The notes beneath the pieces are model-generated. The model saw only the letters and a program-made list of their open reading frames with translations. It made no database searches and was not told the DNA's origin. Below are positions 1-53,929 of a stretch of 64,000 nucleotides of DNA, one piece after another (positions within the stretch are counted from its first letter, which is position 1; every line of letters starts with the position of its first letter). The position numbers were made by a program, and so were the translations under genes. Source of the stretch: Hypanus sabinus (taxonomy: Eukaryota); assembly GCF_030144855.1 (NCBI RefSeq), contig NC_082730.1:14136001-14200000 (forward strand), given 5' to 3'.

Positions 1-3000
1 GGAACACCGAGACTGGACTTGGACTCAAGTCGAACACCGAGCCTGGACTTGGACTCAAGTGGAATACCGAACCTGGACATGGACTCGAGTGGAACACCGA
101 ACCTGGACTTGGAACTGAGTGGAACACCGAGCCTGGACTGGACTCGAGTGGAACACCGAGCCTGGACTTGAACTCGAGTGGAACACCGAGCCTGGACTTG
201 GACTCGAGTGGAATACCGAACCTGGACATGGACTCGAGTGGAACACCGAACCTGGACTTGGAACTGAGTGGAACACCGAGCCTAGACTTGGACTCGAGTG
301 GAACACCGAGCCTGGACTTGGACTCGAGTGGAACACCGAACCTGGACGTGGACTCAAGTGGAACACCGAGTCTGGACATGGAACCTAGTGGCGCACTGAG
401 CCTGGACTTGGACTTGAGTGGAACACCGAGACTGGACTTGGAACTGAGTGGAAGACTGAGCCTGGACTTGGACTCGAGTGGAACACCGACTCTGGACATG
501 GAACCGAGTGGAACACCGAGCCTGGACTTGGACTCGAGCAAAACACCGAGTCTGGACATGGAACCAAGTGGAACACCGAGCCTGGACATGGAACCGAGTG
601 GAACACCGAGCCTGGACTTGGACTCGAGCGGAACACCGGGTCTGGACATGGAACCAAGTGGAACACCGAGCCTGGACTGGACTCGAGAGGAACACTGAGC
701 CTGGACTTGGACTCGAGTGGAACACTGAGCCTGGACTTGGACTCGAGTGGAACACCTAGCCTGGACTTGGACTCGAGTGGAACACCGAGCCTGGACTTGG
801 ACTCGAGTGGAACACCGAGCCTGGACTTGGACTCGAGTGGAACACTGAGCCTAGACTTGGACTCGAGTGGAACACCGAGCCTGGACTTGGACTCGAGCGG
901 AAAACCGAGCCTGGACTTGGAACTGAGTGGAACACCGAGCCTGGACTTGGACTCGAGTGGAACACCGAGCCTGGACTTGAACTCGAGTGGAACACCGAGC
1001 CTGGACTTGGACTCAAGTCGAACACCGAGCCTGGACTTGGACTCAAGTGGAACACCGAGCCTGGACTTGGACTCGAGTGGAATACCGAACCTGGACATGG
1101 ACTCGAGTGGAACACCGAACCTGGACGTGGACTCAAGTGGAACACCGAGCCTGGACTTGGACTCAAGTCGAACACCGAGCCTGGACTTGGACTCAAGTGG
1201 AACACCGAGCCTGGACTTGGACTCGAGTGGAACACCGAACCTGGACGTGGACTCAAGTGGAACACCGAGTCTGGACATGGAACCTAGTGGCGCACTGAGC
1301 CTGGACTTGGACTTGCGTGGAACACCGAGACTGGACTTGGAACTGAGTGGAACACCAAGCCTGGACTTGGACTCGAGTGGAACACCGAGACTGGACTTGG
1401 AACTGAGTGGAACACCAAGTCTGGACTTGGACTCGAGTGGAAGACTGAGCCTGGACTTGGACTCGAGTGGAACACCGAGTCTGGACATGGAACCGAGTGG
1501 AACACCGAGCCTGGACTTGGACTCGAGCGGAACACCGACTCTGGACATGGAACCGAGTGGAACACCGAGCCTGGACTTGGACTCGAGCAAAACACCGAGT
1601 CTGGACATGGAACCAAGTGGAACACCGAGCCTGGACATGGAACCGAGTGGAACACCGAGCCTGGACTTGGACTCGAGCGGAACACCGGGTCTGGACATGG
1701 AACCAAGTGGAACACCGAGCCTGGACTGGACTCGAGTGGAACACTGAGCCTGGACTTGGACTCGAGTGGAACACTGAGCCTGGACTTGGACTCGAGTGGA
1801 ACACCTAGCCTGGACTTGGACTCGAGTGGAACACCGAGCCTGGACTTGGACTCGAGTGGAACACCGAGCCTGGACTTGGAACTGAGTGGAACACCGAGCC
1901 TGGACTTGGACTCGAGTGGAACACCGAGCCTGGACTTGAACTCGAGTGGAACACCGAGCCTGGACTTGGACTCAAGTCGAACACCGAGCCTGGACTTGGA
2001 CTCAAGTGGAACACCGAGCCTGGACTTGGACTCGAGTGGAATACCGAACCTGGACATGGACTCGAGTGGAACACCGAACCTGGACGTGGACTCAAGTGGA
2101 ACACCGAGCCTGGACTTGGACTCAAGTCGAACACCGAGCCTGGACTTGGACTCAAGTGGAACACCGAGCCTGGACTTGGACTCGAGTGGAACACCGAACC
2201 TGGACGTGGACTCAAGTGGAACACCGAGTCTGGACATGGAACCTAGTGGCGCACTGAGCCTGGACTTGGACTTGAGTGGAACACCGAGACTGGACTTGGA
2301 ACTGAGTGGAACACCAAGCCTGGACTTGGACTCGAGTGGAACACCGAGACTGGACTTGGAACTGAGTGGAACACCAAGTCTGGACTTGGACTCGAGTGGA
2401 AGACTGAGCCTGGACTTGGACCTGAGTGGAACACCGAGTCTGGACATGGAACCGAGTGGAACACCGAGCCTGGACTTGGACTCGAGCGGAACACCGACTC
2501 TGGACATGGAACCGAGTGGAACACCGAGCCTGGACTTGGACTCGAGCAAAACACCGAGTCTGGACATGGAACCAAGTGGAACACCGAGCCTGGACATGGA
2601 ACCGAGTGGAACACCGAGCCTGGACTTGGACTCGAGCGGAACTCCGGGTCTGGACATGGAACCAAGTGGAACACCGAGCCTGGACTGGACTCGAGTGGAA
2701 CACTGAGCCTGGACTTGGACTCGAGTGGAACACTGAGCCTGGACTTGGACTCGAGTGGAACACCTAGCCTGGACTTGGACTCGAGTGGAACACCGAGCCT
2801 GGACTTGGACTCGAGTGGAACACCGAGCCTGGACTTGGACTCGAGTGGAACACTGAGCCTGGACTTGGACTCGAGTGGAACACTGAGCCTGGACTTGGAC
2901 TCGAACGGAACACCGAGCCTGGACTTGGAACTGAGTGGAACACCGAGCCTGGACTTGGACTCGAGTGGAACACCGAGCCTGGACTTGAACTCGAGTGGAA

Positions 3001-6000
3001 CACCGAGCCTGGACTTGGACTCAATTCGAACACCGAGCCTGGACTTGGACTCAAGTGGAACACCGAGCCTGGACTTGGACTCGAGTGGAATACCGAACCT
3101 GGACATGGACTCGAGTGGAACACCGAATCTGGACTTGGAACTGAGTGGAACACCGAGCCTGGACTTGGACTCGAGTGGAACACCGAACCTGGACGTGGAC
3201 TCAAGTGGAACACCGAGTCTGGACATGGAACCTAGTGGCGCACTGAGCCTGGACTTGGACTTGAGTGGAACACCGAGACTGGACTTGGAACTGAGTGGAA
3301 CACCAAGCCTGGACTTGGACTCGAGTGGAACACCGAGACTGGACTTGGAACTGAGTGGAACACCAAGTCTGGACTTGGACTCGAGTGGAAGACTGAGCCT
3401 GGACTTGGACCTGAGTGGAACACCGAGTCTGGACATGGAACCGAGTGGAACACCGAGCTTGGACTTGGACTCGAGCGGAACACCGACTCTGGACATGGAA
3501 CCGAGTGGAACACCGAGCCTGGACTTGGACTCGAGCAAAACACCGAGTCTGGACATGGAACCAAGTGGAACACCGAGCCTGGACATGGAACCGAGTGGAA
3601 CACCGAGCCTGGACTTGGACTCGAGCGGAACACCGGGTCTGGACATGGAACCAAGTGGAACACCGAGCCTGGACTGGACTCGAGTGGAACACTGAGCCTG
3701 GACTTGGACTCGAGTGGAACACTGAGCCTGGACTTGGACTCGAGTGGAACACCTAGCCTGGACTTGGACTCGAGTGGAACACCGAGCCTGGACTTGGACT
3801 CGAGTGGAACACCGAGCCTGGACTTGGACTCGAGTGGAACACTGAGCCTGGACTTGGACTCGAGTGGAACACTGAGCCTGGACTTGGACTCGAACGGAAC
3901 ACCGAGCCTGGACTTGGAACTGAGTGGAACACCGAGCCTGGACTTGGACTCGAGTGGAACACCGAGCCTGGACTTGAACTCGAGTGGAACACCGAGCCTG
4001 GACTTGGACTCAATTCGAACACCGAGCCTGGACTTGGACTCAAGTGGAACACCGAGCCTGGACTTGGACTCGAGTGGAATACCGAACCTGGACATGGACT
4101 CGAGTGGAACACCGAATCTGGACTTGGAACTGAGTGGAACACCGAGCCTGGACTGGACTCGAGTGGAACACCGAGCCTGGACTGGACTCGAGTGGAACAC
4201 CGAGCCTGGACTTGAACTCGAGTGGAACCGAGCCTGGACTTGGACTCGAGTGGAACACCGAGCCTGGACTTGGACTCGAGTGGAACACCGAGCCTGGACT
4301 TGGACTCGAGTGGAACACCGAGCCTGGACTTGGACTCGAGTGGAACACCGAGCCTGGACTTGGACTCGAGTGGAACTCCGAGCCTGGACTTGGACACGAG
4401 TGGAACACCGAGCCTGGACTTGGACTCGAGTGGAACACCGAGCCTGGACTTGGACTCGAGTGGAACACCGAGTCTGGACATGGAACCTGGTGGAACACCG
4501 AGCCTGAACTTGGACTCGAGTGGAACACTGAGCCTGGACTTGGACTCGAGTGGAACACTGAGCCTGGACTTGGACTCGAGTGGAACACCTAGCCTGGACT
4601 TGGACTCGAGTGGAACACCGAGCCTGGACTTGGACTCGAGTGGAACACCGAGCCTGGACTTGGACTCGAGTGGAACACTGAGCCTGGACTTGGACTCGAG
4701 TGGAACACCGAGCCTGGACTTGGACTCGAGCGGAACACCGAGCCTGGACTTGGAACTGAGTGGAACACCGAGCCTGGACTTGGACTCGAGTGGAACACCG
4801 AGCCTGGACTTGAACTCGAGTGGAACACCGAGCCTGGACTTGGTCTCCAGTGGAACACCGAGCCTGGACTGGACTCGAGTGGAACACTGAGCCTGGACTT
4901 GGACTCGAGTGGAACACTGAGCCTGGACTTGGACTCGAGTGGAACACCGAGCCTGGACTTGGACTCGAGCGGAACACCGAGCCTGGACTTGGAACTGAGT
5001 GGAACAACGAGCCTGGACTTGGACTCGAGTGGAACACCGAGCCTGGACTTGAACTCGAGTGGAACACCGAGCCTGGACTTGGACTCAAGTCGAACACCGA
5101 GCCAGGACTTGGACTCAAGTGGAATACCGAACCTGGACATGGACTCGAATGGAACACCGAACCTGGACTTGGAACTGAGTGGAACACCGAGCCTGGACTG
5201 GACACGAGTGGAACACTGAGCCTGGACTTGGACTCGAGTGGAACACTGAGCCTGGACTTGGACTCGAGTGGAACACCTAGCCTGGACTTGGACTCGAGTG
5301 GAACACCGAGCCTGGACTTGGACTCGAGTGGAACACCGAGCCTGGACTTGGACTCGAGTGGAACACCGAGCCTGGACTTGGACTCCAGTGGAACACCGAG
5401 CCTGGACTGGACTCGAGTGGAACACTGAGCCTGGACTTGGACTCGAGTGGAACACTGAGCCTGGACTTGGACTCGAGCGGAACACCGAGCCTGGACTTGG
5501 ACTCGAGCGGAACACCGAGCCTGGACTTGGAACTGAGTGGAACACCGAGCCTGGACTTGGACTCGAGTGGAACACCGAGCCTGGACTTGAACTCGAGTGG
5601 AACACCGAGACTGGACTTGGACTCAAGTCGAACACCGAGCCTGGACTTGGACTCAAGTGGAATACCGAACCTGGACATGGACTCGAGTGGAACACCGAAC
5701 CTGGACTTGGAACTGAGTGGAACACCGAGCCTGGACTGGACTCGAGTGGAACACCGAGCCTGGACTTGAACTCGAGTGGAACACCGAGCCTGGACTTGGA
5801 CTCGAGTGGAATACCGAACCTGGACATGGACTCGAGTGGAACACCGAACCTGGACTTGGAACTGAGTGGAACACCGAGCCTAGACTTGGACTCGAGTGGA
5901 ACACCGAGCCTGGACTTGGACTCGAGTGGAACACCGAACCTGGACGTGGACTCAAGTGGAACACCGAGTCTGGACATGGAACCTAGTGGCGCACTGAGCC

Positions 6001-9000
6001 TGGACTTGGACTTGAGTGGAACACCGAGACTGGACTTGGAACTGAGTGGAACACCAAGCCTGGACTTGGACTCGAGTGGAACACCGAGACTGGACTTGGA
6101 ACTGAGTGGAACACCAAGTCTGGACTTGGACTCGAGTGGAAGACTGAGCCTGGACTTGGACTCGAGTGGAACACCGAGTCTGGACATGGAACCGAGTGGA
6201 ACACCGAGCCTGGACTTGGACTCGAGCGGAACACCGACTCTGGACATGGAACCGAGTGGAACACCGAGCCTGGACTTGGACTCGAGCAAAACACCGAGTC
6301 TGGACATGGAACCAAGTGGAACACCGAGCCTGGACATGGAACCGAGTGGAACACCGAGCCTGGACTTGGACTCGAGCGGAACACCGGGTCTGGACATGGA
6401 ACCAAGTGGAACACCGAGCCTGGACTGGACTCGAGTGGAACACTGAGCCTGGACTTGGACTCGAGTGGAACACTGAGCCTGGACTTGGACTCGAGTGGAA
6501 CACCTAGCCTGGACTTGGACTCGAGTGGAACACCGAGCCTGGACTTGGACTCGAGTGGAACACCGAGCCTGGACTTGGACTCGAGTGGAACACTGAGCCT
6601 GGACTTGGACTCGAGTGGAACACCGAGCCTGGACTTGGACTCGAGCGGAACACCGAGCCTGGACTTGGAACTGAGTGGAACACCGAGCCTGGACTTGGAC
6701 TCGAGTGGAACACCGAGCCTGGACTTGAACTCGAGTGGAACACCGAGCCTGGACTTGGACTCAAGTCGAACACCGAGCCTGGACTTGGACTCAAGTGGAA
6801 CACCGAGCCTGGACTTGGACTCGAGTGGAATACCGAACCTGGACATGGACTCGAGTGGAACACCGAACCTGGACGTGGACTCAAGTGGAACACCGAGCCT
6901 GGACTTGGACTCAAGTCGAACACAGAGCCTGGACTTGGACTCAAGTGGAACACCGAGCCTGGACTTGGACTCGAGTGGAACACCGAACCTGGACGTGGAC
7001 TCAAGTGGAACACCGAGTCTGGACATGGAACCTAGTGGCGCACTGAGCCTGGACTTGGACTTGAGTGGAACACCGAGACTGGACTTGGAACTGAGTGGAA
7101 CACCAAGCCTGGACTTGGACTCGAGTGGAACACCGAGACTGGACTTGGAACTGAGTGGAACACCAAGTCTGGACTTGGACTCGAGTGGAAGACTGAGCCT
7201 GGACTTGGACTCGAGTGGAACACCGAGTCTGGACATGGAACCGAGTGGAACACCGAGCCTGGACTTGGACTCGAGCGGAACACCAACTCTGGACATGGAA
7301 CCGAGTGGAACACCGAGCCTGGACTTGGACTCGAGCAAAACACCGAGTCTGGACATGGAACCAAGTGGAACACCGAGCCTGGACATGGAACCGAGTGGAA
7401 CACCGAGCCTGGACTTGGACTCGAGCGGAACACCGGGTCTGGACATGGAACCAAGTGGAACACCGAGCCTGGACTGGACTCGAGTGGAACACTGAGCCTG
7501 GACTTGGACTCGAGTGGAACACTGAGCCTGGACTTGGACTCGAGTGGAACACCTAGCCTGGACTTGGACTCGAGTGGAACACCGAGCCTGGACTTGGACT
7601 CGAGTGGAACACCGAGCCTGGACTTGGAACTGAGTGGAACACCGAGCCTGGACTTGGACTCGAGTGGAACATCGAGCCTGGACTTGAACTCGAGTGGAAC
7701 ACCGAGCCTGGACTTGGACTCAAGTCGAACACCGAGCCTGGACTTGGACTCAAGTGGAACACCGAGCCTGGACTTGGACTCGAGTGGAATACCGAACCTG
7801 GACATGGACTCGAGTGGAACACCGAACCTGGACGTGGACTCAAGTGGAACACCGAGCCTGGACTTGGACACAAGTCGAACACCGAGCCTGGACTTGGACT
7901 CAAGTGGAACACCGAGCCTGGACTTGGACTCGAGTGGAACACCGAACCTGGACGTGGACTCAAGTGGAACACCGAGTCTGGACATGGAACCTAGTGGCGC
8001 ACTGAGCCTGGACTTGGACTTGAGTGGAACACCGAGACTGGACTTGGAACTGAGTGGAACACCAAGCCTGGACTTGGACTCGAGTGGAACACCGAGACTG
8101 GACTTGGAACTGAGTGGAACACCAAGTCTGGACTTGGACTCGAGTGGAAGACTGAGCCTGGACTTGGACCTGAGTGGAACACCGAGTCTGGACATGGAAC
8201 CGAGTGGAACACCGAGCCTGGACTTGGACTCGAGCGGAACACCGACTCTGGACATGGAACCGAGTGGAACACCGAGCCTGGACTTGGACTCGAGCAAAAC
8301 ACCGAGTCTGGACATGGAACCAAGTGGAACACCGAGCCTGGACATGGAACCGAGTGGAACACCGAGCCTGGACTTGGACTCGAGCGGAACACCGGGTCTG
8401 GACATGGAACCAAGTGGAACACCGAGCCTGGACTGGACTCGAGTGGAACACTGAGCCTGGACTTGGACTCGAGTGGAACACTGAGCCTGGACTTGGACTC
8501 GAGTGGAACACCTAGCCTGGACTTGGACTCGAGTGGAACACCGAGCCTGGACTTGGACTCGAGTGGAACACCGAGCCTGGACTTGGACTCGAGTGGAACA
8601 CTAAGCCTGGACTTGGACTCGAGTGGAACACCGAGCCTGGACTTGGACTCGAACGGAACACCGAGCCTGGACTTGGAACTGAGTGGAACACCGAGCCTGG
8701 ACTTGGACTCGAGTGGAACACCGAGCCTGGACTTGAACTCGAGTGGAACACCGAGCCTGGACTTGGACTCAATTCGAACACCGAGCCTGGACTTGGACTC
8801 AAGTGGAACACCGAGCCTGGACTTGGACTCGAGTGGAATACCGAACCTGGACATGGACTCGAGTGGAACACCGAACCTGGACTTGGAACTGAGTGGAACA
8901 CCGAGCCTGGACTGGACTCGAGTGGAACACCGAGCCTGGACTGGACTCGAGTGGAACACCGAGCCTGGACTTGAACTCGAGTGGAACCGAGCCTGGACTT

Positions 9001-12000
9001 GGACTCGAGTGGAACACCGAGCCTGGACTTGGACTCGAGTGGAACACCGAGCCTGGAATTGGACTCGAGTGGAACACCGAGCCTGGACTTGGACTCGAGT
9101 GGAACACCGAGCCTGGACTTGGACTCGAGTGGAACTCCGAGCCTGGACTTGGACACGAGTGGAACACCGAGCCTGGACTTGGACTCGAGTGGAACACCGA
9201 GCCTGGACTTGGACTCGAGTGGAACACCGAGTCTGGACATGGAACCTGGTGGAACACCGAGCCTGAACTTGGACTCGAGTGGAACACTGAGCCTGGACTT
9301 GGACTCGAGTGGAACACTGAGCCTGGACTTGGACTCGAGTGGAACACCTAGCCTGGACTTGGACTCGAGTGGAACACCGAGCCTGGACTTGGACTCGAGT
9401 GGAACACCGAGCCTGGACTTGGACTCGAGTGGAACACTGAGCCTGGACTTGGACTCGAGTGGAACACCGAGCCTGGACTTGGACTCGAGCGGAACACCGA
9501 GCCTGGACTTGGAACGGAGTGGAACACCGAGCCTGGACTTGGACTCGAGTGGAACACCGAGACTGGACTTGAACTCGAGTGGAACACCGACCCTGGACTT
9601 GGTCTCCAGTGGAACACCGAGCCTGGACTGGACTCGAGTGGAACACTGAGCCTGGACTTGGACTCGAGTGGAACACTGAGCCTGGACTTGGACTCGAGTG
9701 GAACACCGAGCCTGGACTTGGACTCGAGCGGAACACCGAGCCTGGACTTGGAACTGAGTGGAACAACGAGCCTGGACTTGGACTCGAGTGGAACACCGAG
9801 CCTGGACTTGAACTCGAGTGGAACACCGAGCCTGGACTTGGACTCAAGTCGAACACCGAGCCAGGACTTGGACTCAAGTGGAATACCGAACCTGGACATG
9901 GACTCGAATGGAACACCGAACCTGGACTTGGCACTGAGTGGAACACCGAGCCTGGACTGGACACGAGTGGAACACCGAGCCTGGATTTGAACTCGAGTGG
10001 AACACCGAGCCTGGACTTGGACTCGAGTGAAATACCGAACCTGGACATGGACTCGAGTGGAACACCGAACCTGGACTTGGAACTGAGTGGAACACCGAGC
10101 CTGGACTGGACTCGAGTGGAACACCGAGCCTGGACTGGACTCGAGTGGAACACCGAGCCTGGACTTGAACTCGAGTGGAACCGAGCCTGGACTTGGACTC
10201 GAGTGGAACACCGAGCCTGGACTTGGACTCGAGTGGAACACCGAGCCTGGACTTGGACTCGAGTGGAACACCGAGCCTGGACTTGGACTCGAGTGGAACA
10301 CCGAGCCTGGACTTGGACACGAGTGGAACACCGAGCCTGGACTTGGACTCGAGTGGAACACCGAGCCTGGACTTGGACTCGAGTGGAACACCGAGTCTGG
10401 ACATGGAACCTGGTGGAACACCGAGCCTGAACTTGGACTCGAGTGGAACACCGAGTCTGGACATGGAACCAAGTGGAACACCGAGCCTGGACTTGGACTC
10501 GAGTGGAACACCGAGCCTGGACTTGGACTCGAGTGGAACACCGAGCCTGGACTTGGACTCGAGTGGAACACCGAGCCTGGACTTGGACTCGAGCAGAACA
10601 CCAAGCCTGGACTTGGAACTGAGTGGAACACCGAGCCTGGACTGGACTCGAGTGGAACACCGAGCCTGGACTTGGACTCGAGTGGAACACCGAGCCTGGA
10701 TTTGGACTCGAGTGGAACACCGAGCCTGGACTTGGACTCGAGCGGAACACCAAGCCTGGACTTGGAACTGAGTGGAACACCGAGCCTGGACTTGGACTCG
10801 AGTGGAACACCGAGCCTGGACTTGGACTCGAGTGGAACACCGAGCCTGGATTTGGACTCGAGTGGAACACCGAGCCTGGACTTGGACTCGAGCGGAACAC
10901 CAAGACTGGACTTGGACTCGCGTGGAACACCGAACCTGGACATGGACTCGATTGGAACACCGAGCCTGGACTTGGACTCGAGTGGAACACCGAGCCTGGA
11001 CTTGGACTCGAGTGGAACACCAAGCCTGGACTTGGACTCGAGTGGAACACCGAGCCTGGATTTGGACTCGAGTGGAACACCGAGCCTGGACCTGGACTCG
11101 AGCGGAACACCGAGCCTGGACTTGGAACTGAGTGGAACACCGAGCCTGGACTGGACTCGAGTGGAACACCGAACCTGGACTTGGACTCGAGTGGAACACC
11201 GAACCTGGACTTGGACTCGAGTGGAACACCGAGCCTGGACTTGAACTCGAGTGGAACACCGAGCCTGGACTTGGACTCAAGTCGAACACCGAGCCAGGAC
11301 TTGGACTCAAGTGGAATACCGAACCTGGACATGGACTCGAATGGAACACCGAACCTGGACTTGGAACTGAGTGGAACACCGAGCCTGGACTGGACTCGAG
11401 TGGAACACCGAGCCTGGACTTGAACTCGAGTGGAACACCGAGCCTGGACTTGGACTCGAGTGGAATACCGAACCTGGACATGGACTCGAGTGGAACACCG
11501 AACCTGGACTTGGAACTGAGTGGAACACCGAGCCTGGACTGGACTCGAGTGGAACACCGAGCCTGGACTGGACTCGAGTGGAACACCGAGCCTGGACTTG
11601 AACTCGAGTGGAACCGAGCCTGGACTTGGACTCGAGTGGAACACCGAGCCTGGACTTGGACTCGAGTGGAACACCGAGCCTGGACTTGGACTCGAGTGGA
11701 ACACCGAGCCTGGACTTGGACTCGAGTGGAACACCGAGCCTGGACTTGGACACGAGTGGAACACCGAGCCTGGACTTGGACTCGAGTGGAACACCGAGCC
11801 TGGACTTGGACTCGAGTGGAACACCGAGTCTGGACATGGAACCTGGTGGAACACCGAGCCTGAACTTGGACTCGAGTGGAACACCGAGTCTGGACATGGA
11901 ACCAAGTGGAACACCGAGCCTGGACTTGGACTCGAGTGGAACACCGAGCCTGGACTTGGACTCGAGTGGAACACCGAGCCTGGACTTGTACTCGAGTGGA

Positions 12001-36000: not shown

Positions 36001-39000
36001 TGGAACACCGAGCCTGGACTTGGACTCGAGTGGAACACCGAACCTGGACATGGACTCGAGTGGAACACCGAGCCTGGACTTGGACTCGAGTGGAACACCG
36101 AACCGGGACTTGGAACTGAGTGGAACACCGAGCCTGGACTGGACTCGAGTGGAACACCGAGCCTGGACTGGACTCGAGTGGAACACCGAGCCTGGACTTG
36201 AACTCGAGTGGAACCGAGCCTGGACTTGGACTCGAGTGGAACACCGAGCCTGGACTTGGACTCGAGTGGAACACCGAGCCTGGACTTGGACTCGAGTGGA
36301 ACACCGAGCCTGGACTTGGACACGAGTGGAACACCGAGCCTGGACTTGGACTCGAGTGGAACACCGAGCCTGGACTTGGACTCGAGTGGAACACCGAGTC
36401 TGGACATGGAACCTGGTGGAACACCGAGCCTGAACTTGGACTCGAGTGGAACACCGAGTCTGGACATGGAACCAAGTGGAACACCGAGCCTGGACTTGGA
36501 CTCGAGTGGAACACCGAGCCTGGACTTGGAATCGAGTGGAACACCGAGCCTGGACTTGGACTCGAGTGGAACACCGAGCCTGGACTTGGACTCGAGTGGA
36601 ACACCGAGCCTGGACTTGGACTCGAGCAGAACACCAAGCCTGGACTTGGAACTGAGTGGAACACCGAGCCTGGACTGGACTCGAGTGGAACACCGAGCCT
36701 GGACTTGGACTCGAGTGGAACACCGAGCCTGGATTTGGACTCGAGTGGAACATCGAGCCCGGACTTGGACTCGAGCGGAACACCAAGCCTGGACTTGGAA
36801 CTGAGTGGAACACCGAGCCTGGACTTGGACTCGAGTGGAACACCGAGCCTGGACTTGGACTCGAGTGGAACACCGAGCCTGGATTTGGACTCGAGTGGAA
36901 CACCGAGCCTGGACTTGGACTCGAGCGGAACACCGAGACTGGACTTGGACTCGCGTGGAACACCGAACCTGGACATGGACTCGAGTGGAACACCGAGCCT
37001 GGACTTGGACTCGAGTGGAACACCGAGCCTGGACTTGGACTCGAGTGGAACACCAAGCCTGGACTTGGACTCGAGTGGAACACCGAGCCTGGATTTGGAC
37101 TCGAGTGGAACACCGAGCCTGGACCTGGACTCGAGCGGAACACCGAGCCTGGACTTGGAACTGAGTGGAACACCGAGCCTGGACTGGACTCGAGTGGAAC
37201 ACCGAACCTGGACTTGGACTCGAGTGGAACACCGAACCTGGACTTGGACTCGAGTGGAACACCGAGCCTGGACTTGAACTCGAGTGGAACACCGAGCCTG
37301 TACTTGGACTCGAGTGGAACACCGAGCCTGGACTTGGACTCAAGTGGAACACCGAACCTGGACATGGAACCAAGTGGAACACCGAGCCTGGACTTGAACT
37401 CCAGTGGAACACCGAGACTGGACTTGGACTCGAGTGGAACACCAAGACTGGACTTGGACTCGAGTGGAACACCGAGCCTGGACTGGACTCGAGTGGAACA
37501 CCGAGCCTGGACTTGGACTCGAGTGGAACACCGAACCTGGACATGGCCTCGAGTGGAACACAGAGCCTGGACTTGGACTCGAGCGGAACACCGAGTCTGG
37601 ACATGGAACCAAGTGGAACACCGAGCCTGGACATGGACTCGAGTGGAACACCGAGCCTGGACTTGGACTCGAGTGGAACACCGAGCCTGGACTGGACTCG
37701 AGTGGAACACTGAGCCTGGACTTGGACTCGAGTGGAACACCGAGCCTGGACATGGACTCGAGTGGAACACCGAGCCTGGACTTGGACTCGAGTGGAACAC
37801 CGAGCCTGGACTGGACTCGAGTGGAACACCGAGCCTGGACTTGGACTCGAGTGGAACACCGAGCCTGGACTTGGACTCGAGTGGAACACCGAGCCTGGAC
37901 TTGGACTCGAGTGGAACACCGAGCCTGGACTTGGAATCGAGCAGAACACCAAGCCTGGACTTGGAACTGAGTGGAACACCGAGCCTGGACTGGACTCGAG
38001 TGGAACACCGAGCCTGGACTTGGACTCTAGTGGAACACCGAGCCTGGATTTGGACTCGAGTGGAACACCGAGCCTGGACTTGGACTCGAGCGGAACACCA
38101 AGCCTGGACTTGGAACTGAGTGGAACACCGAGCCTGGACTTGGACTCGAGTGGAACACCGAGCCTGGACTTGGACTCGAGTGGAACACCGAGCCTGGATA
38201 TGGACTCGAGTGGAACACTGAGCCTGGACTTGGACTCGAGTGGAACACCGAGCCTGGACATGGACTCGAGTGGAACACCGAGCCTGGACTTGGACTCGAG
38301 TGGAACACCGAGCCTGGACTGGACTCGAGTGGAACACCGAGCCTGGACTTGGACTCGAGTGGAACACCGAGCCTGGACTTGGACTCGAGTGGAACACCGA
38401 ACCTGGACATGGACTCGAGTGGAACACCGAGCCTGGACTTGGACTCGAGTGGAACACCGAACCGGGACTTGGAACCGAGTGGAACACCGAGCCTGGACTG
38501 GACTCGAGTGGAACACCGAGCCTGGACTGGACTCGAGTGGAACACCGAGCCTGGACTTGAACTCGAGTGGAACCGAGCCTGGACTTGGACTCGAGTGGAA
38601 CACCGAGCCTGGACTTGGACTCGAGTGGAACACCGAGCCTGGACTTGGACTCGAGTGGAACACCGAGCCTGGACTTGGACTCGAGTGGAACACCGAGCCT
38701 GGACTTGGACACGAGTGGAACACCGAGCCTGGACTTGGACTCGAGTGGAACACCGAGCCTGGACTTGGACTCGAGTGGAACACCGAGTCTGGACATGGAA
38801 CCTGGTGGAACACCGAGCCTGAACTTGGACTCGAGTGGAACACCGAGTCTGGACATGGAACCAAGTGGAACACCGAGCCTGGACTTGGACTCGAGTGGAA
38901 CACCGAGCCTGGACTTGGACTCGAGTGGAACACCGAGCCTGGACTTGGACTCGAGTGGAACACCGAGCCTGGACTTGGACTCGAGTGGAACACCGAGCCT

Positions 39001-42000
39001 GGACTTGGACTCGAGCATAACACCAAGCCTGGACTTGGAACTGAGTGGAACACCGAGCCTGGACTGGACTCGAGTGGAACACCGAGCCTGGACTTGGACT
39101 CGAGTGGAACACCGAGCCTGGATTTGGACTCGAGTGGAACATCGAGCCTGGACTTGGACTCGAGCGGAACACCAAGCCTGGACTTGGAACTGAGTGGAAC
39201 ACCGAGCCTGGACTCGATTGGAACACCGAGCCTGGACTTGGACTCGTGGAACACCGAGCCTGGATTTGGACTCGAGTGGAACACCGAGCCTGGACTTGGA
39301 CTCGAGCGGAACACCAAGACTGGACTTGGACTCGCGTGGAACACCGAACCTGGACATGGACTCGAGTGGAACACCGAGCCTGGACTTGGACTCGAGTGGA
39401 ACACCGAGCCTGGACTTGGACTCGAGTGGAACACCAAGCCTGGACTTGGACTCGAGTGGAACACCGAGCCTGGATTTGGACTCGAGTGGAACACCGAGCC
39501 TGGACCTGGACTCGAGCGGAACACCGAGCCTGGACTTGGAACTGAGTGGAACACCGAGCCTGGACTGGACTCGAGTGGAACACCGAACCTGGACTTGGAC
39601 TCGAGTGGAACACCGAACCTGGACTTGGACTCGAGTGGAACACCGAGCCTGGACTTGAACTCGAGTGGAACACCGAGCCTGGACTTGGACTCGAGTGGAA
39701 CACCGAGCCTGGACTTGGACTCAAGTGGAACACCGAACCTGGACATGGAACCAAGTGGAACACCGAGCCTGGACTTGAACTCCAGTGGAACACCGAGACT
39801 GGACTTGGACTCGAGTGGAACACCAAGACTGGACTTGGACTCGAGTGGAACACCGAGCCTGGACTGGACTCGAGTGGAACACCGAGCCTGGACTTGGACT
39901 CGAGTGGAACACCGAACCTGGACATGGCCTCGAGTGGAACACAGAGCCTGGACTTGGACTCGAGTGGAACACCGAGCCTGGACTGGACTCGAGTGGAACA
40001 CTGAGCCTGGACTTGGACTCGAGTGGAACACCGAGCCTGGACTTGGACTCGAGTGGAACACCGAACCTGGACATGGACTCGAGTGGAACACCAAGCCTGG
40101 ACTTGGACTCGAGTGGAACACCGAACCGGGACTTGGAACTGAGTGGAACACCGAGCCTGGACTGGACTCGAGTGGAACACCGAGCCTGGACTGGACTCGA
40201 GTGGAACACCGAGCCTGGACTTGAACTCGAGTGGAACCGAGCCTGGACTTGGACTCGAGTGGAACACCGAGCCTGGACTTGGACTCGAGTGGAACACCGA
40301 GCCTGGACTTGGACTCGAGTGGAACACCGAGCCTGGACTTGGACTCGAGTGGAACACCGAGCCTGGACTTGGACACGAGTGGAACACCGAGCCTGGACTT
40401 GGACTCGAGTGGAACACCGAGCCTGGACTTGGACTCGAGTGGAACACCGAGTCTGGACATGGAACCTGGTGGAACACCGAGCCTGAACTTGGACTCGAGT
40501 GGAACACCGAGTCTGGACATGGAACCAAGTGGAACACCGAGCCTGGACTTGGACTCGAGTGGAACACCGAGCCTGGACTTGGACTCGAGTGGAACACCGA
40601 GCCTGGACTTGGACTCGAGTGGAACTCCGAGCCTGGACTTGGACTCGAGTGGAACACCGAGCCTGGACTTGGACTCGAGCAGAACACCAAGCCTGGACTT
40701 GGAACTGAGTGGAACACCGAGCCTGGACTGGACTCGAGTGGAACACCGAGCCTGGACTTGGACTCGAGTGGAACACCGAGCCTGGATTTGGACTCGAGTG
40801 GAACATCGAGCCTGGACTTGGACTCGAGCGGAACACCAAGCCTGGACTTGGAACTGAGTGGAACACCGAGCCTGGACTCGAGTGGAACACCGAGCCTGGA
40901 CTTGGACTCGAGTGGAACACCGAGCCTGGATTTGGACTCGAGTGGAACACCGAACCTGGACTTGGACTCGAGCGGAACACCAAGACTGGACTTGGACTCG
41001 CGTGGAACACCGAACCTGGACATGGACTCGAGTGGAACACCGAGCCTGGACTTGGACTCGAGTGGAACACCGAGCCTGGACTTGGACTCGAGTGGAACAC
41101 CAAGCCTGGACTTGGACTCGAGTGGAACACCGAGCCTGGATTTGGACTCGAGTGGAACACCGAGCCTGGACCTGGACTCGAGCGGAACACCGAGCCTGGA
41201 CTTGGAACTGAGTGGAACACCGAGCCTGGACTGGACTCGAGTGGAACACCGAACCTGGACTTGGACTCGAGTGGAACACCGAACCTGGACTTGGACTCGA
41301 GTGGAACACCGAGCCTGGACTTGAACTCGAGTGGAACACCGAGCCTGGACTTGGACTCGAGTGGAACACCGAGCCTGGACTTGGACTCAAGTGGAACACC
41401 GAACCTGGACATGGAACCAAGTGGAACACCGAGCCTGGACTTGAACTCCAGTGGAACACCGAGACTGGACTTGGACTCGAGTGGAACACCAAGACTGGAC
41501 TTGGACTCGAGTGGAACACCGAGCCTGGACTGGACTCGAGTGGAACACCGAGCCTGGACTTGGACTCGAGTGGAACACCGAACCTGGACATGGCCTCGAG
41601 TGGAACACAGAGCCTGGACTTGGACTCGAGCGGAACACCGAGTCTGGACATGGAACCAAGTGGAACACCGAGCCTGGACATGGACTCGAGTGGAACACCG
41701 AGCCTGGACTTGGACTCGAGTGGAACACCGAGCCTGGACTGGACTCGAGTGGAACACTGAGCCTGGACTTGGACTCGAGTGGAACACCGAGCCTGGACAT
41801 GGACTCGAGTGGAACACCGAGCCTGGACTTGGACTCGAGTGGAACACCGAGCCTGGACTGGACTCGAGTGGAACACCGAGCCTGGACTTGGACTCGAGTG
41901 GAACACCGAGCCTGGACTTGGACTCGAGTGGAACACCGAGCCTGGACTTGGACTCGAGTGGAACACCGAGCCTGGACTTGGAATCGAGCAGAACACCAAG

Positions 42001-45000
42001 CCTGGACTTGGAACTGAGTGGAACACCGAGCCTGGACTGGACTCGAGTGGAACACCGAGCCTGGACTTGGACTCGAGTGGAACACCGAGCCTGGATTTGG
42101 ACTCGAGTGGAACACCGAGCCTGGACTTGGACTCGAGCGGAACACCAAGCCTGGACTTGGAACTGAGTGGAACACCGAGCCTGGACTTGGACTCGAGTGG
42201 AACACCGAGCCTGGACTTGGACTCGAGTGGAACACCGAGCCTGGATATGGACTCGAGTGGAACACCGAGCCTGGACTTGGACTCGAGCGGAACACCAAGA
42301 CTGGACTTGGACTCGCGTGGAACACCGAACCTGGACATGGACTCGAGTGGAACACCGAGCCTGGACTTGGACTCGAGTGGAACACCGAGCCTGGACTTGG
42401 ACTCGAGTGGAACACCAAGCCTGGACTTGGACTCGAGTGGAACACCGAGCCTGGATTTGGACTCGAGTGGAACACCGAGCCTGGACCTGGACTCGAGCGG
42501 AACACCGAGCCTGGACTTGGAACTGAGTGGAACACCGAGCCTGGACTGGACTCGAGTGGAACACCGAACCTGGACTTGGACTCGAGTGGAACACCGAACC
42601 TGGACTTGGACTCGAGTGGAACACCGAGCCTGGACTTGAACTCGAGTGGAACACCGAGCCTGGACTTGGACTCGAGTGGAACACCGAGCCTGAACTTGGA
42701 CTCAAGTGGAACACCGAACCTGGACATGGAACCAAGTGGAACACCGAGCCTGGACTTGAACTCCAGTGGAACACCGAGACTGGACTTGGACTCGAGTGGA
42801 ACACCAAGACTGGACTTGGACTCGAGTGGAACACCGAGCCTGGACTGGACTCGAGTGGAACACCGAGCCTGGACTTGGACTCGAGTGGAACACCGAACCT
42901 GGACATGGCCTCGAGTGGAACACAGAGCCTGGACTTGGACTCGAGCGGAACACCGAGTCTGGACATGGAACCAAGTGGAACACCGAACCTGGACATGGAC
43001 TCGAGTGGAACACCGAGCCTGGACTTGGACTCGAGTGGAACACCGAGCCTGGACTGGACTCGAGTGGAACACTGAGCCTGGACTTGGACTCGAGTGGAAC
43101 ACCGAGCCTGGACATGGACTCGAGTGGAACACCGAGCTTGGACTTGGACTCGAGTGGAACACCGAGCCTGGACTGGACTCGAGTGGAACACCGAGCCTGG
43201 ACCTGGACTCGAGCGGAACACCGAGCCTGGACTTGGAACTGAGTGGAACACCGAGCCTGGACTGGACTCGAGTGGAACACCGAACCTGGACTTGGACTCG
43301 AGTGGAACACCGAACCTGGACTTGGACTCGAGTGGAACACCGAGCCTGGACTTGAACTCGAGTGGAACACCGAGCCTGGACTTGGACTCGAGTGGAACAC
43401 CGAGCCTGGACTTGGACTCAAGTGGAACACCGAACCTGGACATGGAACCAAGTGGAACACCGAGCCTGGACTTGAACTCCAGTGGAACACCGAGACTGGA
43501 CTTGGACTCGAGTGGAACACCAAGACTGGACTTGGACTCGAGTGGAACACCGAGCCTGGACTGGACTCGAGTGGAACACCGAGCCTGGACTTGGACTCGA
43601 GTGGAACACCGAACCTGGACATGGCCTCGAGTGGAACACAGAGCCTGGACTTGGACTCGAGCGGAACACCGAGTCTGGACATGGAACCAAGTGGAACACC
43701 GAGCCTGGACATGGACTCGAGTGGAACACCGAGCCTGGACTTGGACTCGAGTGGAACACCGAGCCTGGACTGGACTCGAGTGGAACACTGAGCCTGGACT
43801 TGGACTCGAGTGGAACACCGAGCCTGGACATGGACTCGAGTGGAACACCGAGCCTGGACTTGGACTCGAGTGGAACACCGAGCCTGGACTGGACTCGAGT
43901 GGAACACCGAGCCTGGACTTGGACTCGAGTGGAACACCGAGCCTGGACTTGGACTCGAGTGGAACACCGAGCCTGGACTTGGACTCGAGTGGAACACCGA
44001 GCCTGGACTTGGAATCGAGCAGAACACCAAGCCTGGACTTGGAACTGAGTGGAACACCGAGCCTGGACTGGACTCGAGTGGAACACCGAGCCTGGACTTG
44101 GACTCGAGTGGAACACCGAGCCTGGATTTGGACTCGAGTGGAACACCGAGCCTGGACTTGGACTCGAGCGGAACACCAAGCCTGGACTTGGAACTGAGTG
44201 GAACACCGAGCCTGGACTTGGACTCGAGTGGAACACCGAGCCTGGACTTGGACTCGAGTGGAACACCGAGCCTGGATATGGACTCGAGTGGAACACCGAG
44301 CCTGGACTTGGACTCGAGCGGAACACCAAGACTGGACTTGGACTCGCGTGGAACACCGAACCTGGACATGGACTCGAGTGGAACACCGAGCCTGGACTTG
44401 GACTCGAGTGGAACACCGAGCCTGGACTTGGACTCGAGTGGAACACCAAGCCTGGACTTGGACTCGAGTGGAACACCGAGCCTGGATTTGGACTCGAGTG
44501 GAACACCGAGCCTGGACCTGGACTCGAGCGGAACACCGAGCCTGGACTTGGAACTGAGTGGAACACCGAGCCTGGACTGGACTCGAGTGGAACACCGAAC
44601 CTGGACTTGGACTCGAGTGGAACACCGAACCTGGACTTGGACTCGAGTGGAACACCGAGCCTGGACTTGAACTCGAGTGGAACACCGAGCCTGGACTTGG
44701 ACTCGAGTGGAACACCGAGCCTGGACTTGGACTCAAGTGGAACACCGAACCTGGACATGGAACCAAGTGGAACACCGAGCCTGGACTTGAACTCCAGTGG
44801 AACACCGAGACTGGACTTGGACTCGAGTGGAACACCAAGACTGGACTTGGACTCGAGTGGAACACCGAGCCTGGACTGGACTCGAGTGGAACACCGAGCC
44901 TGGACTTGGACTCGAGTGGAACACCGAACCTGGACATGGCCTCGAGTGGAACACAGAGCCTGGACTTGGACTCGAGCGGAACACCGAGTCTGGACATGGA

Positions 45001-48000
45001 ACCAAGTGGAACACCGAACCTGGACATGGACTCGAGTGGAACACCGAGCCTGGACTTGGACTCGAGTGGAACACCGAGCCTGGACTGGACTCGAGTGGAA
45101 CACTGAGCCTGGACTTGGACTCGAGTGGAACACCGAGCCTGGACATGGACTCGAGTGGAACACCGAGCCTGGACTTGGACTCGAGTGGAACACCGAGCCT
45201 GGACTGGACTCGAGTGGAACACTGAGCCTGGACTTGGACTCGAGTGGAACACCGAGCCTGGACTTGGACTCGAGTGGAACACCGAGCCTGGACTTGGACT
45301 CGAGTGGAACACTGAGCCTGGACTTGGACTCGAGTGGAACACCGAGCCTGGACTTGGACTCGAGCGGAACACCGAGCGTGGACTTGGAACTGAGTGGAAC
45401 ACCGAGCCTGGACTTGGACTCGAGTGGAACACCGAGCCTGGACTTGAACTCGAGTGGAACACCGAGCCTGGACTTGGACTCAAGTCGAACACCGAGCCTG
45501 GACTTGGACTCAAGTGGAACACCGAGCCTGGACTTGGACTCGAGTGGAACACCGAACCTGGACATGGACTCGAGTGGAACACCGAACCTGGACTTGGAAC
45601 TGAGTGGAACACCGAGCCTGGACTGGACTCGAGTGGAACACCGAGCCTGGACTGGACTCGAGTGGAACACCGAGCCTGGACTTGAACTCGAGTGGAACCG
45701 AGCCTGGACTTGGACCCGAGTGGAACACCGAGCCTGGACTTGGACTCGAGTGGAACACCGAGCCTGGACTTGGACTCGAGTGGAACACCGAGCCTGGACT
45801 TGGACTCGAGTGGAACACCGAGCCTGGACTTGGACTCAAGTGGAACACCGAACCTGGACTTGGACTCGAGTGGAACACCGAGCCTGGACTTGGACTCGAG
45901 TGGAACACCGAACCTGGACATGGACTCGAGTGGAACACCGAACCTGGACATGGAACCTGGTGGAACACCGAGCCTGGACTTGGACTCGAGTGGAACACCG
46001 AGTCTGGACATGGAACCAAGTGGAACACCGAGCCTGGACTTGGACTCGAGTGGAACACCGAGCCTGGACTTGGACTCGAGTGGAACACCGAGCCTGGACT
46101 TGGACTCGAGTGGAACACCGAGCCTGGACTTGGACTCGAGCAGAACACCAAGCCTGGACTTGGAACTGAGTGGAACACCGAGCCTGGACTGGACTCGAGT
46201 GGAACACCGAGCCTGGACTTGGACTCGAGTGGAACACCGAGCCTGGACTTGGACTCGAGTGGAACACCGAGCCTGGACTTGGACTCGAGTGGAACACCGA
46301 GCCTGGATTTGAACTCGAGTGGAACACCGAGCCTGGACTTGGACTCGAGCGGAACACCAAGCCTGGACTTAGAACTGAGTGGAACACCGAGCCTGGACTT
46401 GGACTCGAGTGGAACACCGAGCCTGGACTTGGACTCGAGTGGAACACCGAGCCTGGATTTGGACTCGAGTGGAACACCGAGCCTGGACTTGGACTAGAGC
46501 GGAACACCAAGCCTGGACTTGGAACTGAGTGGAACACCGAGCCTGGACTTGGACTCGAGTGGAACACCGAGCCTGGACTTGGACTCGAGTGGAACACCGA
46601 GCCTGGATTTGGACTCGAGTGGAACACCGAGCCTGGACTTGGACTCGAGCGGAACACCAAGACTGGACTTGGACTCGCGTGGAACACCGAACCTGGACAT
46701 GGACTCGAGTGGAACACCGAGCCTGGACTTGGACTCGAGTGGAACACCGAGCCTGGACTTGGACTCGAGTGGAACACCAAGCCTGGACTTGGACTCGAGT
46801 GGAACACCGAGCCTGTATTTGGACTCGAGTGGAACACCAAGCCTGGACCTGGACTCGAGCGGAACACCGAGCCTGGACTTGGAACTGAGTGGAACACCGA
46901 GCCTGGACTGGACTCGAGTGGAACACCGAACCTGGACATGGACTCTAGTGGAACACCGAACCTGGACTTGGACTCGAGTGGAACACCGAACCTGGACTTG
47001 GACTCGAGTGGAACACCGAACCTGGACTTGGACTCGAGCGGAACACCTAACCTGGACTTGGACTCGTGTGGAACACCGAGCCTGGACTTGGACTCGAGTG
47101 GAACACCGAACCTGGACTTGGACTCGAGTGGAACACCGAGCCTGGACTTGGACTCAAGTGGAACACCGAACCTGGACATGGAACCAAGTGGAACACCGAG
47201 CCTGGACTTGAACTCCAGTGGAACACCAAGACTGGACTTGGACTCGAGTGGAACACCAAGACTGGACTTGGACTCGAGTGGAACACCGAGCCTGGACTGG
47301 ACTCGAGTGGAACACCGAGCCTGGACTTGGACTCGAGTGGAACACCGAACCTGGACATGGCCTCGAGTGGAACACCGAGCCTGGACTTGGACTCGAGCGG
47401 AACACCGAGTCTGGACATGGAACCAAGTGGAACACCGAGCCTGGACATGAACTCGAGTGGAACCGAGCCTGGACTTGGACTCGAGTGGAACACCGAGCCT
47501 GGACTTGGACTCGAGTGGAACACCGAGCCTGGACTTGGACTCGAGTGGAACACCGAGCCTGGACTTGGACTCGAGTGGAACACCGAGCCTGGACTTGGAC
47601 TCGAGTGGAACACCGAGCCTGGACTTGGACTCGAGTGGAACACCGAGCCTGGACTTGGACTCGAGTGGAACACCGAGCCTGGACTTGGACTCGAGTGGAA
47701 CACCGAGCCTGGACTTGGACTCGAGTGGAACACTGAGCCTGGACTTGGACTCGAGTGGAACACCGAGCCTGGACTTGGACTCGAGCGGAACACCGAGCCT
47801 GGACTTGGAACTGAGTGGAACACCGAGCCTGGACTTGGACTCGAGTGGAACACCGAGCCTGGACTTGAACTCGAGTGGAACAACGAGCCTGGACTTGGAC
47901 TCAAGTCGAACACCGAGCCTGGACTTGGACTCAAGTGGAACACCGAGCCTGGACTTGGACTCGAGTGGAATACCGAACCTGGACATGGACTCGAGTGGAA

Positions 48001-49615
48001 CACCGAACCTGGACTTGGAACTGAGTGGAACACCGAGCCTGGACTGGACTCGAGTGGAACACCGAGCCTGGACTGGACTCGAGTGGAACACCGAGCCTGG
48101 ACTTCGACTCGAGTGGAACACCAAGACTGGACTTGGACTCGAGTGGAACACCGAGCCTGGACTGGACTCGAGCGGAACACCGAGTCTGGACATGGAACCA
48201 AGTGGAACACCGAGCCTGGACATGAACTCGAGTGGAACCGAGCCTGGACTTGGACTCGAGTGGAACACCGAGCCTGGACTTGGACTCGAGTGGAACACCG
48301 AGCCTGGACTTGGACTCGAGTGGAACACCGAGCCTGGACTTGGACTCGAGTGGAACACCGAGCCTGGACTTGGACTCGAGTGGAACACCGAGCCTGGACA
48401 TGAACTCGAGTGGAACACCGAGCCTGGTCTTGGACTCGAGTGGAACACCGAGCCTGGACTTGGACTCGAGTGGAACACCGAGCCTGGACTTGGACTCGAG
48501 TGGAACACCGAGCCTGGACATGGACTCGAGTGGAACACCGAGCCTGGACTTGGACTCGAGTGGAACACCGAGCCTGGACTGGACTCGAGTGGAACACCGA
48601 GCCTGGACTTGGACTCGAGTGGAACACCGAGCCTGGACTTGGACTCGAGTGCAACACCGAGCCTGGACTTGGACTCGAGTGGAACACCGAGCCTGGACTT
48701 GAACTCCAGTGGAACACCGAGCCTGGACTTGGACTCGAGTGGAACACCGAGCCTGGACTTGGACTCGAGTGGAACACCGAGCCTGGACTTGGACTCGAGT
48801 GGAACACCGAGCCTGGACTTGGACTCGAGTGGAACACCGAGCCTGGACTTGAACTCGAGTGGAACACCGAGCCTGGACTTGGACTCGAGCGGAACACCGA
48901 GCCTGGACTTGGACTCGAGTGGAACACCGAGCCTGGACTTGGACTCGAGTGGAACACCGAACCTGGACATGGACTCGAGTGGAACACCGAACCTGGACTT
49001 GGAACTGAGTGGAACACCGATCCTGGACTGGACTCGAGTGGAACACCGAGCCTGGACTGGACTCGAGTGGAACACCGAGCCTGGACTTGAACTCGAGTGG
49101 AACCGAGCCTGGACTTGGACTCGAGTGGAACACCGAGCCTGGACTTGGACTCGAGTGGAACACCGAGCCTGGACTTGGACTCGAGTGGAACACCGAGCCT
49201 GGACTTGGACTCGAGTGGAACACCGAGCCTGGACTTGGACTCGAGTGGAACACCGAGCCTGGTCTTGGACTCCAGTGGAACACCGAACCTGGACTTGGAC
49301 TCGAGTGGAACACCAAGCCTGGACTTGGACTCGAGTGGAACACCGAGCCTGGACTTGGACTCGAGTGGAACACCGAGCCTGGACTTGGACTCGAGTGGAA
49401 CACCGAGCCTGGACTTGGACTTGAGTGGAACACCGAACCTGGACTTGGACTCGAGTGGAACACCGAACCTGGACTTGGACTCGAGTGGAACACCGAACCT
49501 GGACATGGAACCAAGTGGAACTCCGAGCCTGGACTTGGAGTCGAGTGGAACACTGAGCCTGGAGATGGAACCAAGTGGAACACAGATCCTGGACTTGAAG
49601 TTGACTGGAACACAG
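1..49615. repeat. Giant 30-bp tandem (mini)satellite array, ~1,660 monomers, truncated by the left window edge
   Basis: Uninterrupted copies of GGAACACCGAGCCTGGACTTGGACTCGAGT in one orientation. Length variants recur: 29 bp (GGACTGGACTC, e.g. 121-149), 28 bp (GTGGAACCGAG, e.g. ~4,222) and 24 bp (~40,860). The last two full monomers (49,547-49,576 and 49,577-49,606) each differ from consensus at 6 positions. Confidence 0.99.
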
Positions 49616-50154
49616 AAGAGACAGAATACTCAACTCCAAGTAGCAGCAAACGACCAGACCTACTCAATTGGAAACAAGATGACTAAACCAAACAACAACA
49701 CTGAATATGTGTCTTGACACGGAGAAGCTCATGAAGCAGAAAACGGCCAGCAATCACAGCTGGACATGAAAGAGACAGAATTCCTAACTTAGTGTAGGGG
49801 CAAACGGCTGGACCTAATCAGCTGGAAATGAAATGTCTAAAACAAACTACGACAGACCACTCGCATCCCGGCTTGGAGCAGTGGCAAAATGGCCAGCAAC
49901 ACTCAGCTGGACATGAGGCTCTCGACACGACTCAGGAACTGCAGACGTCAGGCTCTCGACTTCACCCATTCTCGACGGATCCGAACAAGCATAGCCACCC
50001 TTCTGAGGTGAGGAACCAGCAGCGAGTAGATGCAAGCTGGAGTATTTATGCAGCGGGTTCGAATGAGGATCAGTTGCCCTAATCAAGGAGCCCAGTGGAA
50101 CATGGGGAATTGGAAATTAACTGAAATGAGTAGATAATGGACCGGATCATGACA
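49616..50154 (-). mobile_element. 5' part of a probable LTR-retrotransposon LTR, running into the satellite
   Basis: The minus strand begins TGTCATGATCCGGTCC at 50,154 (TG start typical of LTRs; the solo LTR at 60,252 also starts TGTCA). A TATA-like CATAAATA lies ~105 bp inside. There is a sharp boundary with a CR1 3'-end fragment at 50,155. The 3' ...CA end and TSD are not in the window. Confidence 0.55.
50043..50050 (-). promoter_or_regulatory. TATA-like box of the putative LTR, pointing into the satellite
   Basis: CATAAATA on the minus strand at a U3-like position; motif match only. Confidence 0.35.
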
Positions 50155-50270
50155 TATGGCTGATCTTGCCATGGACTCAACTTCACCAACCTGCATTTCC
50201 CCCATACCCTTTAAATCCCCTACTATGTAAAAATCTATCCAACCTTGCCTTAAATATATTTACTGGTTAA
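50155..50270 (-). mobile_element. CR1 LINE 3'-end fragment (antisense); host of the putative LTR
   Basis: TATGGCTGATCT...CCCCATACCCTT...AAAAATCTATCCAACCTTGCCTTAAATATATT resembles the antisense CR1 3' sequence at 58,570-58,690 (ATCATGGCTGATC...CTTTAAATACA). Confidence 0.6.
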
Positions 50271-50369
50271 ACCTCTTGAAATAATGTACATGTTGTGTTT
50301 GCCTTAATTAATTGGGGGATTGAGCTTAAAAGACATCAGGTATTATAACAATTCTATAATTCAAGGTAT

Positions 50370-51053
50370 TATACCTTGAATGCTGTCTACTTAGACCTTA
50401 ACAAGGCTTTCTACAAGGCTCCAGAAAGCTGGTCCCCATGGAATCCAGGGAGAGATAGTGAGGAGGAATTAACATTGGCTTTAAGTAGGAAGCAGAGGTG
50501 GTGTTTGAATGGAGTTTGGTGCCTCATGTCATGTCACAAGGATCAGTCTCAGGGCCCTTGTTATTCCTTATTTATTTATCAATCATTCGGAAGCAAGTGC
50601 ACAAGTAAGTTTGTGAAGAGCAGAAAATTAGGAGATACAATTGATAGGGGAGAATGTTAGTGTAGATTACAGAAGTATCTTGATCATTTAGGGAAGTGGA
50701 CTGAGGAGTGGCACATGGATTTCAATACATATGAGTGTGTGATGATGAACTTTGGAAAGTCCAGCCACCATCGGACTTATGCTACAAATGACATGGTGCT
50801 TGTGTGCGTAATGCAACAGTGTGACCTAGAAATACAAGGGCACAGTTCATCGAAAACAGTGACAAAGGTGCTGAAACAAATGTCCAGCACTCCAGCCTTC
50901 ACCTGCCAGGGCACCAAGTGTTAGAGGATTAGAGGACATTGAGTTATCGGGATAGGTTGTCCAGGTTAGATCATTATTCCTCAGAACGCAGGAAAATGAG
51001 AAGTGACCTTATAGAAGTGCCTAAAATTATGGGAGACATAGATAAGGTGGACA
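50370..51053 (+). mobile_element. Degenerate CR1 LINE ORF2 (reverse transcriptase and C-terminus) remnant
   Basis: Broken motifs in the correct order: AVYLDLNKAFYKAP (cf. YLDFSKAFDKV), QGPCYSLFIY (cf. QGSVLGPLLFLIY), SKFV..RKLG (cf. KFADDTKLG), MDFNTYECVMMNFG, SYRDRLSRLDHYSSERRKMRSDLIEVPKIMGDIDKVD. Multiple stops and frameshifts. Confidence 0.85.
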
Positions 51054-51556: not shown

Positions 51557-51739
51557 TAATTAATAACTTAATTATTTTAAAAGTGATAATATTATTATTT
51601 AACAGTTTAAATCAATCTAATTACTTACATGGGCACAACCAAGTGGCAAACACCTTTCACCAAAATCTTGCTTTAAAGTACAAACTTATAAAAGGACTTC
51701 ATAACTTACTCTTCATACATGCCTTATCCAGCTTTGGAG

Positions 51740-53886: not shown

Positions 53887-53929
53887 AACTATTCTGCCTT
53901 CACTGATCCACATAATTACTTTATCAAAC

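Follow-up and report, generated by a model that had tools for sequence, protein, structure and literature searches.

A satellite array of at least 49.6 kb in the Atlantic stingray (Hypanus sabinus) appears to have grown inside a transposable element, with a 30-bp subrepeat internal to a long terminal repeat (LTR), itself lodged in the tail of a CR1 LINE, amplified to the length now seen, an account to which we assign a probability of about 0.6. The window, by which we mean the whole stretch of 64,000 nucleotides analysed, shows both the array and the element from the right flank only. That the array originated from a transposon of one class or another is very likely, and the element that ends at position 50,154 is probably an LTR read on the minus strand. 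LTR identity, the orientation of the element, and the order of events are what we infer from the arrangement described below.

Positions 1–49,613 of the window form a single head-to-tail array of the monomer GGAACACCGAGCCTGGACTTGGACTCGAGT, with a period of 30 bp, 1,661.2 copies, 91% matches, and a score of 81,918 in Tandem Repeats Finder, in agreement with an earlier note on this DNA that had claimed a satellite of at least 49.6 kb. As the first base of the array is base 1 of the window, the array continues past the left side of the window, and its length is a lower bound. The G+C content lies between 0.57 and 0.59 throughout the array, and drops to ~0.40 at 50 kb. A total of 159 distinct monomer types is found, with the most frequent 30-mer (in the GTGGAAC phase) accounting for 430 of 1,429 units, and monomers of 28 or 29 bp making up ~10% of the array. 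In the monomer map, variants form long ordered strings that come back at shifting periods of 48, 61, 68, 121, 131, and 192 monomers, and nucleotide comparison within the array reveals blocks of 2.3–3.9 kb that are 98–99.5% identical at lags of 1.4–10 kb, compared with a whole-array identity of 84% at an offset of one monomer. This disparity between block and monomer identity indicates growth and continuing reshaping by unequal exchange of kb-scale blocks. The long head-to-tail arrangement, the single monomer, and the kb-scale higher-order structure are those of a satellite.

The ratio of observed to expected CpG is 0.71 in the array, compared with 0.21 in the flank. Departures from the consensus are mostly transitions, with 24% of departures falling on the four CpG positions, which constitute 13% of the monomer, a pattern in keeping with an array that is young or under continual homogenisation. 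Every monomer of the array (window 1–49,613) contains the 8-bp palindrome ACTCGAGT, which includes an XhoI site, as well as two or three GGAC subrepeats, and the most frequent length variant, seen in 146 units, is missing one T from between the two TGGAC copies. Open reading frames cross the array on both strands, but an interpretation of the array as coding sequence was rejected, with the 28- and 29-bp monomers shifting the frame again and again; the long reading frames over the array edge stem from the repeat-driven absence of stop codons. No family match was returned by an Rfam scan of positions 47,000–64,000, an exact scan of metagenome contigs with the monomer gave 0 matches, and a search of the literature library consulted found no papers on stingray satellites. 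The 30-bp monomer is probably an undescribed satellite unit.

The right-hand edge of the array (49,487–49,613) is decayed, as the earlier note had described, with the final four monomers scoring 20 (at 49,487), 26 (49,517), 18 (49,547), and 18 (49,577) of 30 against the consensus. The 541-bp segment that follows was previously taken to be non-repetitive, a description that has to be revised, as it contains two tandem units of 154 bp and a shorter duplication. Unit A (49,616–49,769, minus strand; repeat family D1, spacing 154) and unit B (49,770–49,916, minus strand) match at 74% between 49,616–49,700 and 49,770–49,854, at a spacing of 154, and at 87.5% between 49,740–49,769 and 49,886–49,916. 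The duplication (49,910–49,960, minus strand; family D18) comprises the 17-mer GACATGAGGCTCTCGAC, present at both 49,910 and 49,944 and thus 34 bp apart, in the pair GACATGAGGCTCTCGAC and GACGTCAGGCTCTCGAC. The remainder, at 49,917–50,154 on the minus strand, is the terminal single-copy part of the element, which has the highest abundance in other sequencing runs according to the contig depth table, and which carries the terminus common to many copies. The array joins unit A at a position equivalent to the junction between units A and B, where CTGGACATGA is followed by AAGAGACAGAAT.

A seed for the array within this copy of the element is suggested by the sequence of unit B, whose tail (49,898–49,921) is the most monomer-like stretch of the segment, matching at 20 of 25 bases. 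This similarity is not significant against shuffles (p ~0.06), with local alignment of the consensus and the edge monomers giving p values of 0.06–0.3 against shuffles, and a nhmmer profile built from trimers of the monomer finding nothing significant in 49,641–64,000 (E 0.81); it is for this reason that the seed in this copy is put forward as a suggestion.

Comparison of positions 49,540–50,900 with Logan contigs from four runs, representing three organisms, reveals that the segment belongs to a dispersed family, as the earlier note had anticipated. The interval 49,614–50,154 is covered by many contigs at 80–96% identity, with pieces at 84–96% spanning its whole length, and run X1 has a record of 151 bp that shows no difference from the window. 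The match is lost directly behind 50,154 in 44 contigs of run X2 and 20 of run X5, and the flanks beyond this point agree at 0.35–0.39, the level expected by chance, which marks 50,154 as a genuine terminus of a mobile-element family and upholds the abrupt end previously claimed there. Dispersed copies with one exact terminus in common and unrelated flanks are what an LTR family is expected to show. A conserved 22-mer of the terminus had 0 exact matches in the metagenome contigs scanned, and protein-word searches with reading frames from the segment and the array edge yielded no candidate for other copies.

Copies of the family in these runs also bear on the origin of the monomer. In a contig of organism A sequenced at a depth of 177, the match to 49,591–49,616, which corresponds to the last decayed monomer, is immediately preceded by GGACTTGGACATGACGAGGACTCGAAGCCA, a 30-bp unit that has GGACTTGGAC in common with the monomer and agrees with it at 20 of 30 bases by eye, and the contig continues for at least 239 letters beyond this unit. 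In a second contig CTTGGACAGAGACTCGGACTTGACA adjoins the unit sequence, and one contig of X5 carries an additional unit of the type found at the array edge. Furthermore, joints between copies step back by 41 or 44 bp, or skip 95, 171, or 227 bp, in a manner that resembles copy-number variation. Together, the monomer-like units and the joints of 41–227 bp suggest that the family carries here a tandem region that varies between copies, and that it is this region which the copy in the window amplified. The earlier note had proposed looking for monomer-like sequence in the homologues, and since 30-mers of this kind do occur at the corresponding position of other copies, these sequences are best read as the product of amplifying a repeat that already belonged to the element.

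The site into which the element inserted can also be read. The terminus, TGTCA at 50,150–50,154 on the minus strand, opens the sequence TGTCATGATCC read on that strand from 50,154, and is followed on the plus strand by the 3' end of a 5'-truncated CR1 element (50,155–50,265, minus strand) of very high contig depth. The minus strand of this flank encodes the C-terminal motif of CR1 ORF2, and other CR1 copies in the Logan contigs run on beyond 50,265. As claimed, the CR1 3' end that abuts the segment is cut. The flank aligns with a CR1 copy at 58,545–58,700 through GATCAGCCAT, within which the cut lies, and the homology breaks exactly at TGTCATG, while the reference copy reads on past GATCAGCCAT with GATTGAATGGCGGAG on the minus strand; it follows that the element was inserted into the tail of the CR1. 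The plus-strand spelling of the rest of this tail is CCGCCATTCAATC. The reference for the cut tail is the CR1 3' end at 58,510–58,860 on the minus strand, which comprises the C-terminus of ORF2 and the tail GGATCAGCCATGATTGAATGGCGGAGCAG, and to which further CR1 pieces at 54,290–54,362 and 63,863–63,912 are related. The base at 50,155, between the terminus and the CR1 match, is a T, with a C at the equivalent position of the CR1 copy at 58.6 kb, and the consensus of the flanks behind the terminus starts with GTAT in both X2 and X5. These two observations could reflect a weak target preference, or a terminus that lies 1–4 bases further out.

LTRs begin with TG and finish with CA, and are flanked by target site duplications of 4–6 bp. 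The visible end of the element is consistent with this structure, with the second terminus lying beyond the left window edge. The window also contains a solo LTR of 520 bp at 60,252–60,771, already recognised in the earlier note, whose ends are TGTCA, as in the element, and TGACA, and which is flanked by the duplication AGGTC at 60,247–60,251 and 60,772–60,776. A BLAST comparison between the segment and the right flank, this solo LTR included, gave no homology above 13–19 bp. Two contigs of organism A, with depths of 166 (650 bp) and 177 (1,243 bp), read 222 and 530 bp beyond the terminus respectively, into sequence that must be high-copy as well. Such a double context, with unrelated flanks behind the terminus in many copies and a conserved interior adjoining it in others, is the pattern expected of 5' or solo LTRs as opposed to 3' LTRs. 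On the minus strand, the letters of the read-through run AAGGAAGGGGC and then directly TGTCATG, like a polypurine tract ahead of a 3' LTR, although this similarity concerns 30 letters, seen in one or two contigs from a single subfamily that is only 84% identical to the copy in the window. On the plus strand, the same letters lack a TGG start, unlike a primer-binding site. By eye, the terminus does not fit the ends of Helitrons, of Tc1/mariner elements, or of other inverted-repeat transposons.

In the history that we propose, a retrotransposon LTR in minus-strand orientation, with its 5' end at 50,154, would have landed in the 3' tail of a CR1 LINE, either as what is now a solo LTR or as the 5' LTR of an element with its body to the left. 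The interior of this LTR family would have been prone to repeats, both 154-bp units and short subrepeats of the 30-bp type, and in this one copy a 30-bp subrepeat would have been amplified. The initial steps would probably have been replication slippage or unequal exchange among neighbouring subrepeats, with unequal exchange of multi-kb blocks carrying later growth to the 49.6 kb or more now present. In all likelihood the array is a neutral by-product.

Three other explanations of the locus need to be weighed against this history. If the segment were the plus-strand 3' end of a non-LTR retrotransposon or SINE, or of an element of another class, the array would derive from repeats of a 3' UTR. 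A terminus that is sharp and common to the copies is also what the 3' end of a LINE or SINE would give, and with one end visible the TG/CA rule says little. Additionally, contig depth climbs about tenfold across the last 110 bp, from ~1,000 in the 154-bp units to 13,300 at 50,046–50,091 in X2, and from ~350 to 5,200 in X5, a gradient towards the terminus of the kind expected from 5' truncation of a LINE or SINE; a conserved module common to several subfamilies accounts for it equally well. Neither a poly(A) nor a microsatellite tail is present at 50,154, however, and the passage of the high-copy contigs of organism A across the terminus into 222–530 bp of conserved sequence is unexpected for a LINE or SINE 3' end. 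The TGTCA end is moreover that of the proven solo LTR at 60,252, and the window contains no inverted copy of the terminus. We regard a non-LTR origin as unlikely, and the LTR as the favoured source.

The satellite might alternatively be older than the element or unrelated to it, with the element having inserted at the border of an array already present or captured a piece of one. Both scenarios have been discussed for satellites linked to plant Ogre elements (PMC7004042), and the similarity of the monomer to the segment past 49,640 falls short of significance. Against them, the array fades gradually into unit A, and does so at the position equivalent to the junction of units A and B, while monomer-like units occupy the corresponding place in a high-copy contig of the family and in contigs of another organism. 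The right flank of the element, furthermore, is CR1 sequence without satellite. A pre-existing satellite is on this evidence improbable. Less probable still, to the point of being hardly credible, is that the array owes its length to an assembly artefact. Long tandem arrays are hard to assemble, and low-coverage runs contain few exact words of the array, the share found in X1 being 0.24 without and 0.14 with a further 660 bp of array; the 159 monomer types, however, are arranged in ordered, non-identical kb-scale blocks, unlike the outcome of either collapse or artificial inflation. Amplification within an LTR copy remains the reading that we prefer.

The position of the array relative to a promoter was central to the earlier note, which had pointed to a TATA-like box facing the array. 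The heptamer ATAAATA, a putative TATA-like word, is indeed present at 50,049–50,043 on the minus strand, and a CCAAT at 50,113 on the same strand lies ~60 bp from it, with both located upstream of the array. An LTR promoter composed of these motifs might drive a long non-coding satellite transcript, but we consider this improbable. A single A/T heptamer in 541 bp says little for a promoter, and the contig comparison shows that most other copies have a T at 50,044 and so read ATAAAAA. Neither AATAAA nor ATTAAA, the poly(A) signals sought, occurs on either strand of 49,614–50,154, and searches of sequencing runs with the stretch found no RNA run that contains it. The implied layout, a U3 of ~135 bp and then over 400 bp of repeats, would also be unusual for an LTR. 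Tandem repeats in LTRs are more often located in U3, upstream of the promoter, and the array could therefore equally sit upstream of the real promoter. It is very unlikely that such a promoter yields a long satellite RNA from the array, whether to act in chromatin or to silence the LTR family. Were it true, the locus would represent a promoter-equipped new satellite in a vertebrate, whose birth could be traced from seed to array. From the earlier claim of a satellite inside an LTR, then, the mobile-element family, its common terminus, and its place inside a cut CR1 are retained, with an LTR the favoured class, while promoter-driven RNA is unsupported.

The route from transposon to satellite is already well known, and here it is the monomer that is probably undescribed, the kind of event being a familiar one. 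Nine satellites of Lathyrus come from subrepeats of Ogre retrotransposons (PMC7004042), and the Ogre (Ty3/gypsy) satellites of Lathyrus sativus resemble the stingray family in that short arrays occupy a fixed place in dispersed copies (Vondrak et al. 2020, PMC7004042). They are also alike in the growth of a few copies into long homogenised arrays with higher-order structure (PMC7004042). The source in Lathyrus is the 3' UTR between pol and the 3' LTR (PMC7004042), whereas that in the stingray apparently lies inside the LTR. The Ogre satellites are found in plants, in contrast to the stingray array, which is found in a cartilaginous fish and is seen from one flank. LTRs are listed among the commonest sources of satellites by a review (PMC9659126), which also cites minisatellites of the mouse with an origin inside transposon-like LTRs (Kelly 1994, Genomics 24:509; PMC9659126). 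As far as that citation describes them, the mouse minisatellites are alike in that a short repeat lying in an LTR-type element expanded in situ at a single locus (PMC9659126).

If our account is correct, the Atlantic stingray locus offers a clean cartilaginous-fish example of how satellite DNA begins, with a short internal repeat of one element copy expanded to tens of kilobases while sister copies keep a few units. The mouse arrays of 1994 reportedly reach kilobases, not tens of kilobases, unlike the array described here. As the array edge, the host element, and the insertion site can all be read, the locus could be used to date and to model array growth, although, given how well transitions from transposon to satellite are documented, it opens no new question.

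To the right of the element, exons of an immunoglobulin-superfamily receptor are located at 53,930–61,673 on the minus strand. These include a V-set domain at 61,320–61,673 (Pfam E 1.8e-11), an Ig domain at 59,517–59,903 that scores under the Pfam cut-off, and a tail reading frame at 53,930–54,181 with two ITIM-like motifs, IVYAKV and VNYADI. The solo LTR at 60,252–60,771 probably lies within an intron of this receptor gene.
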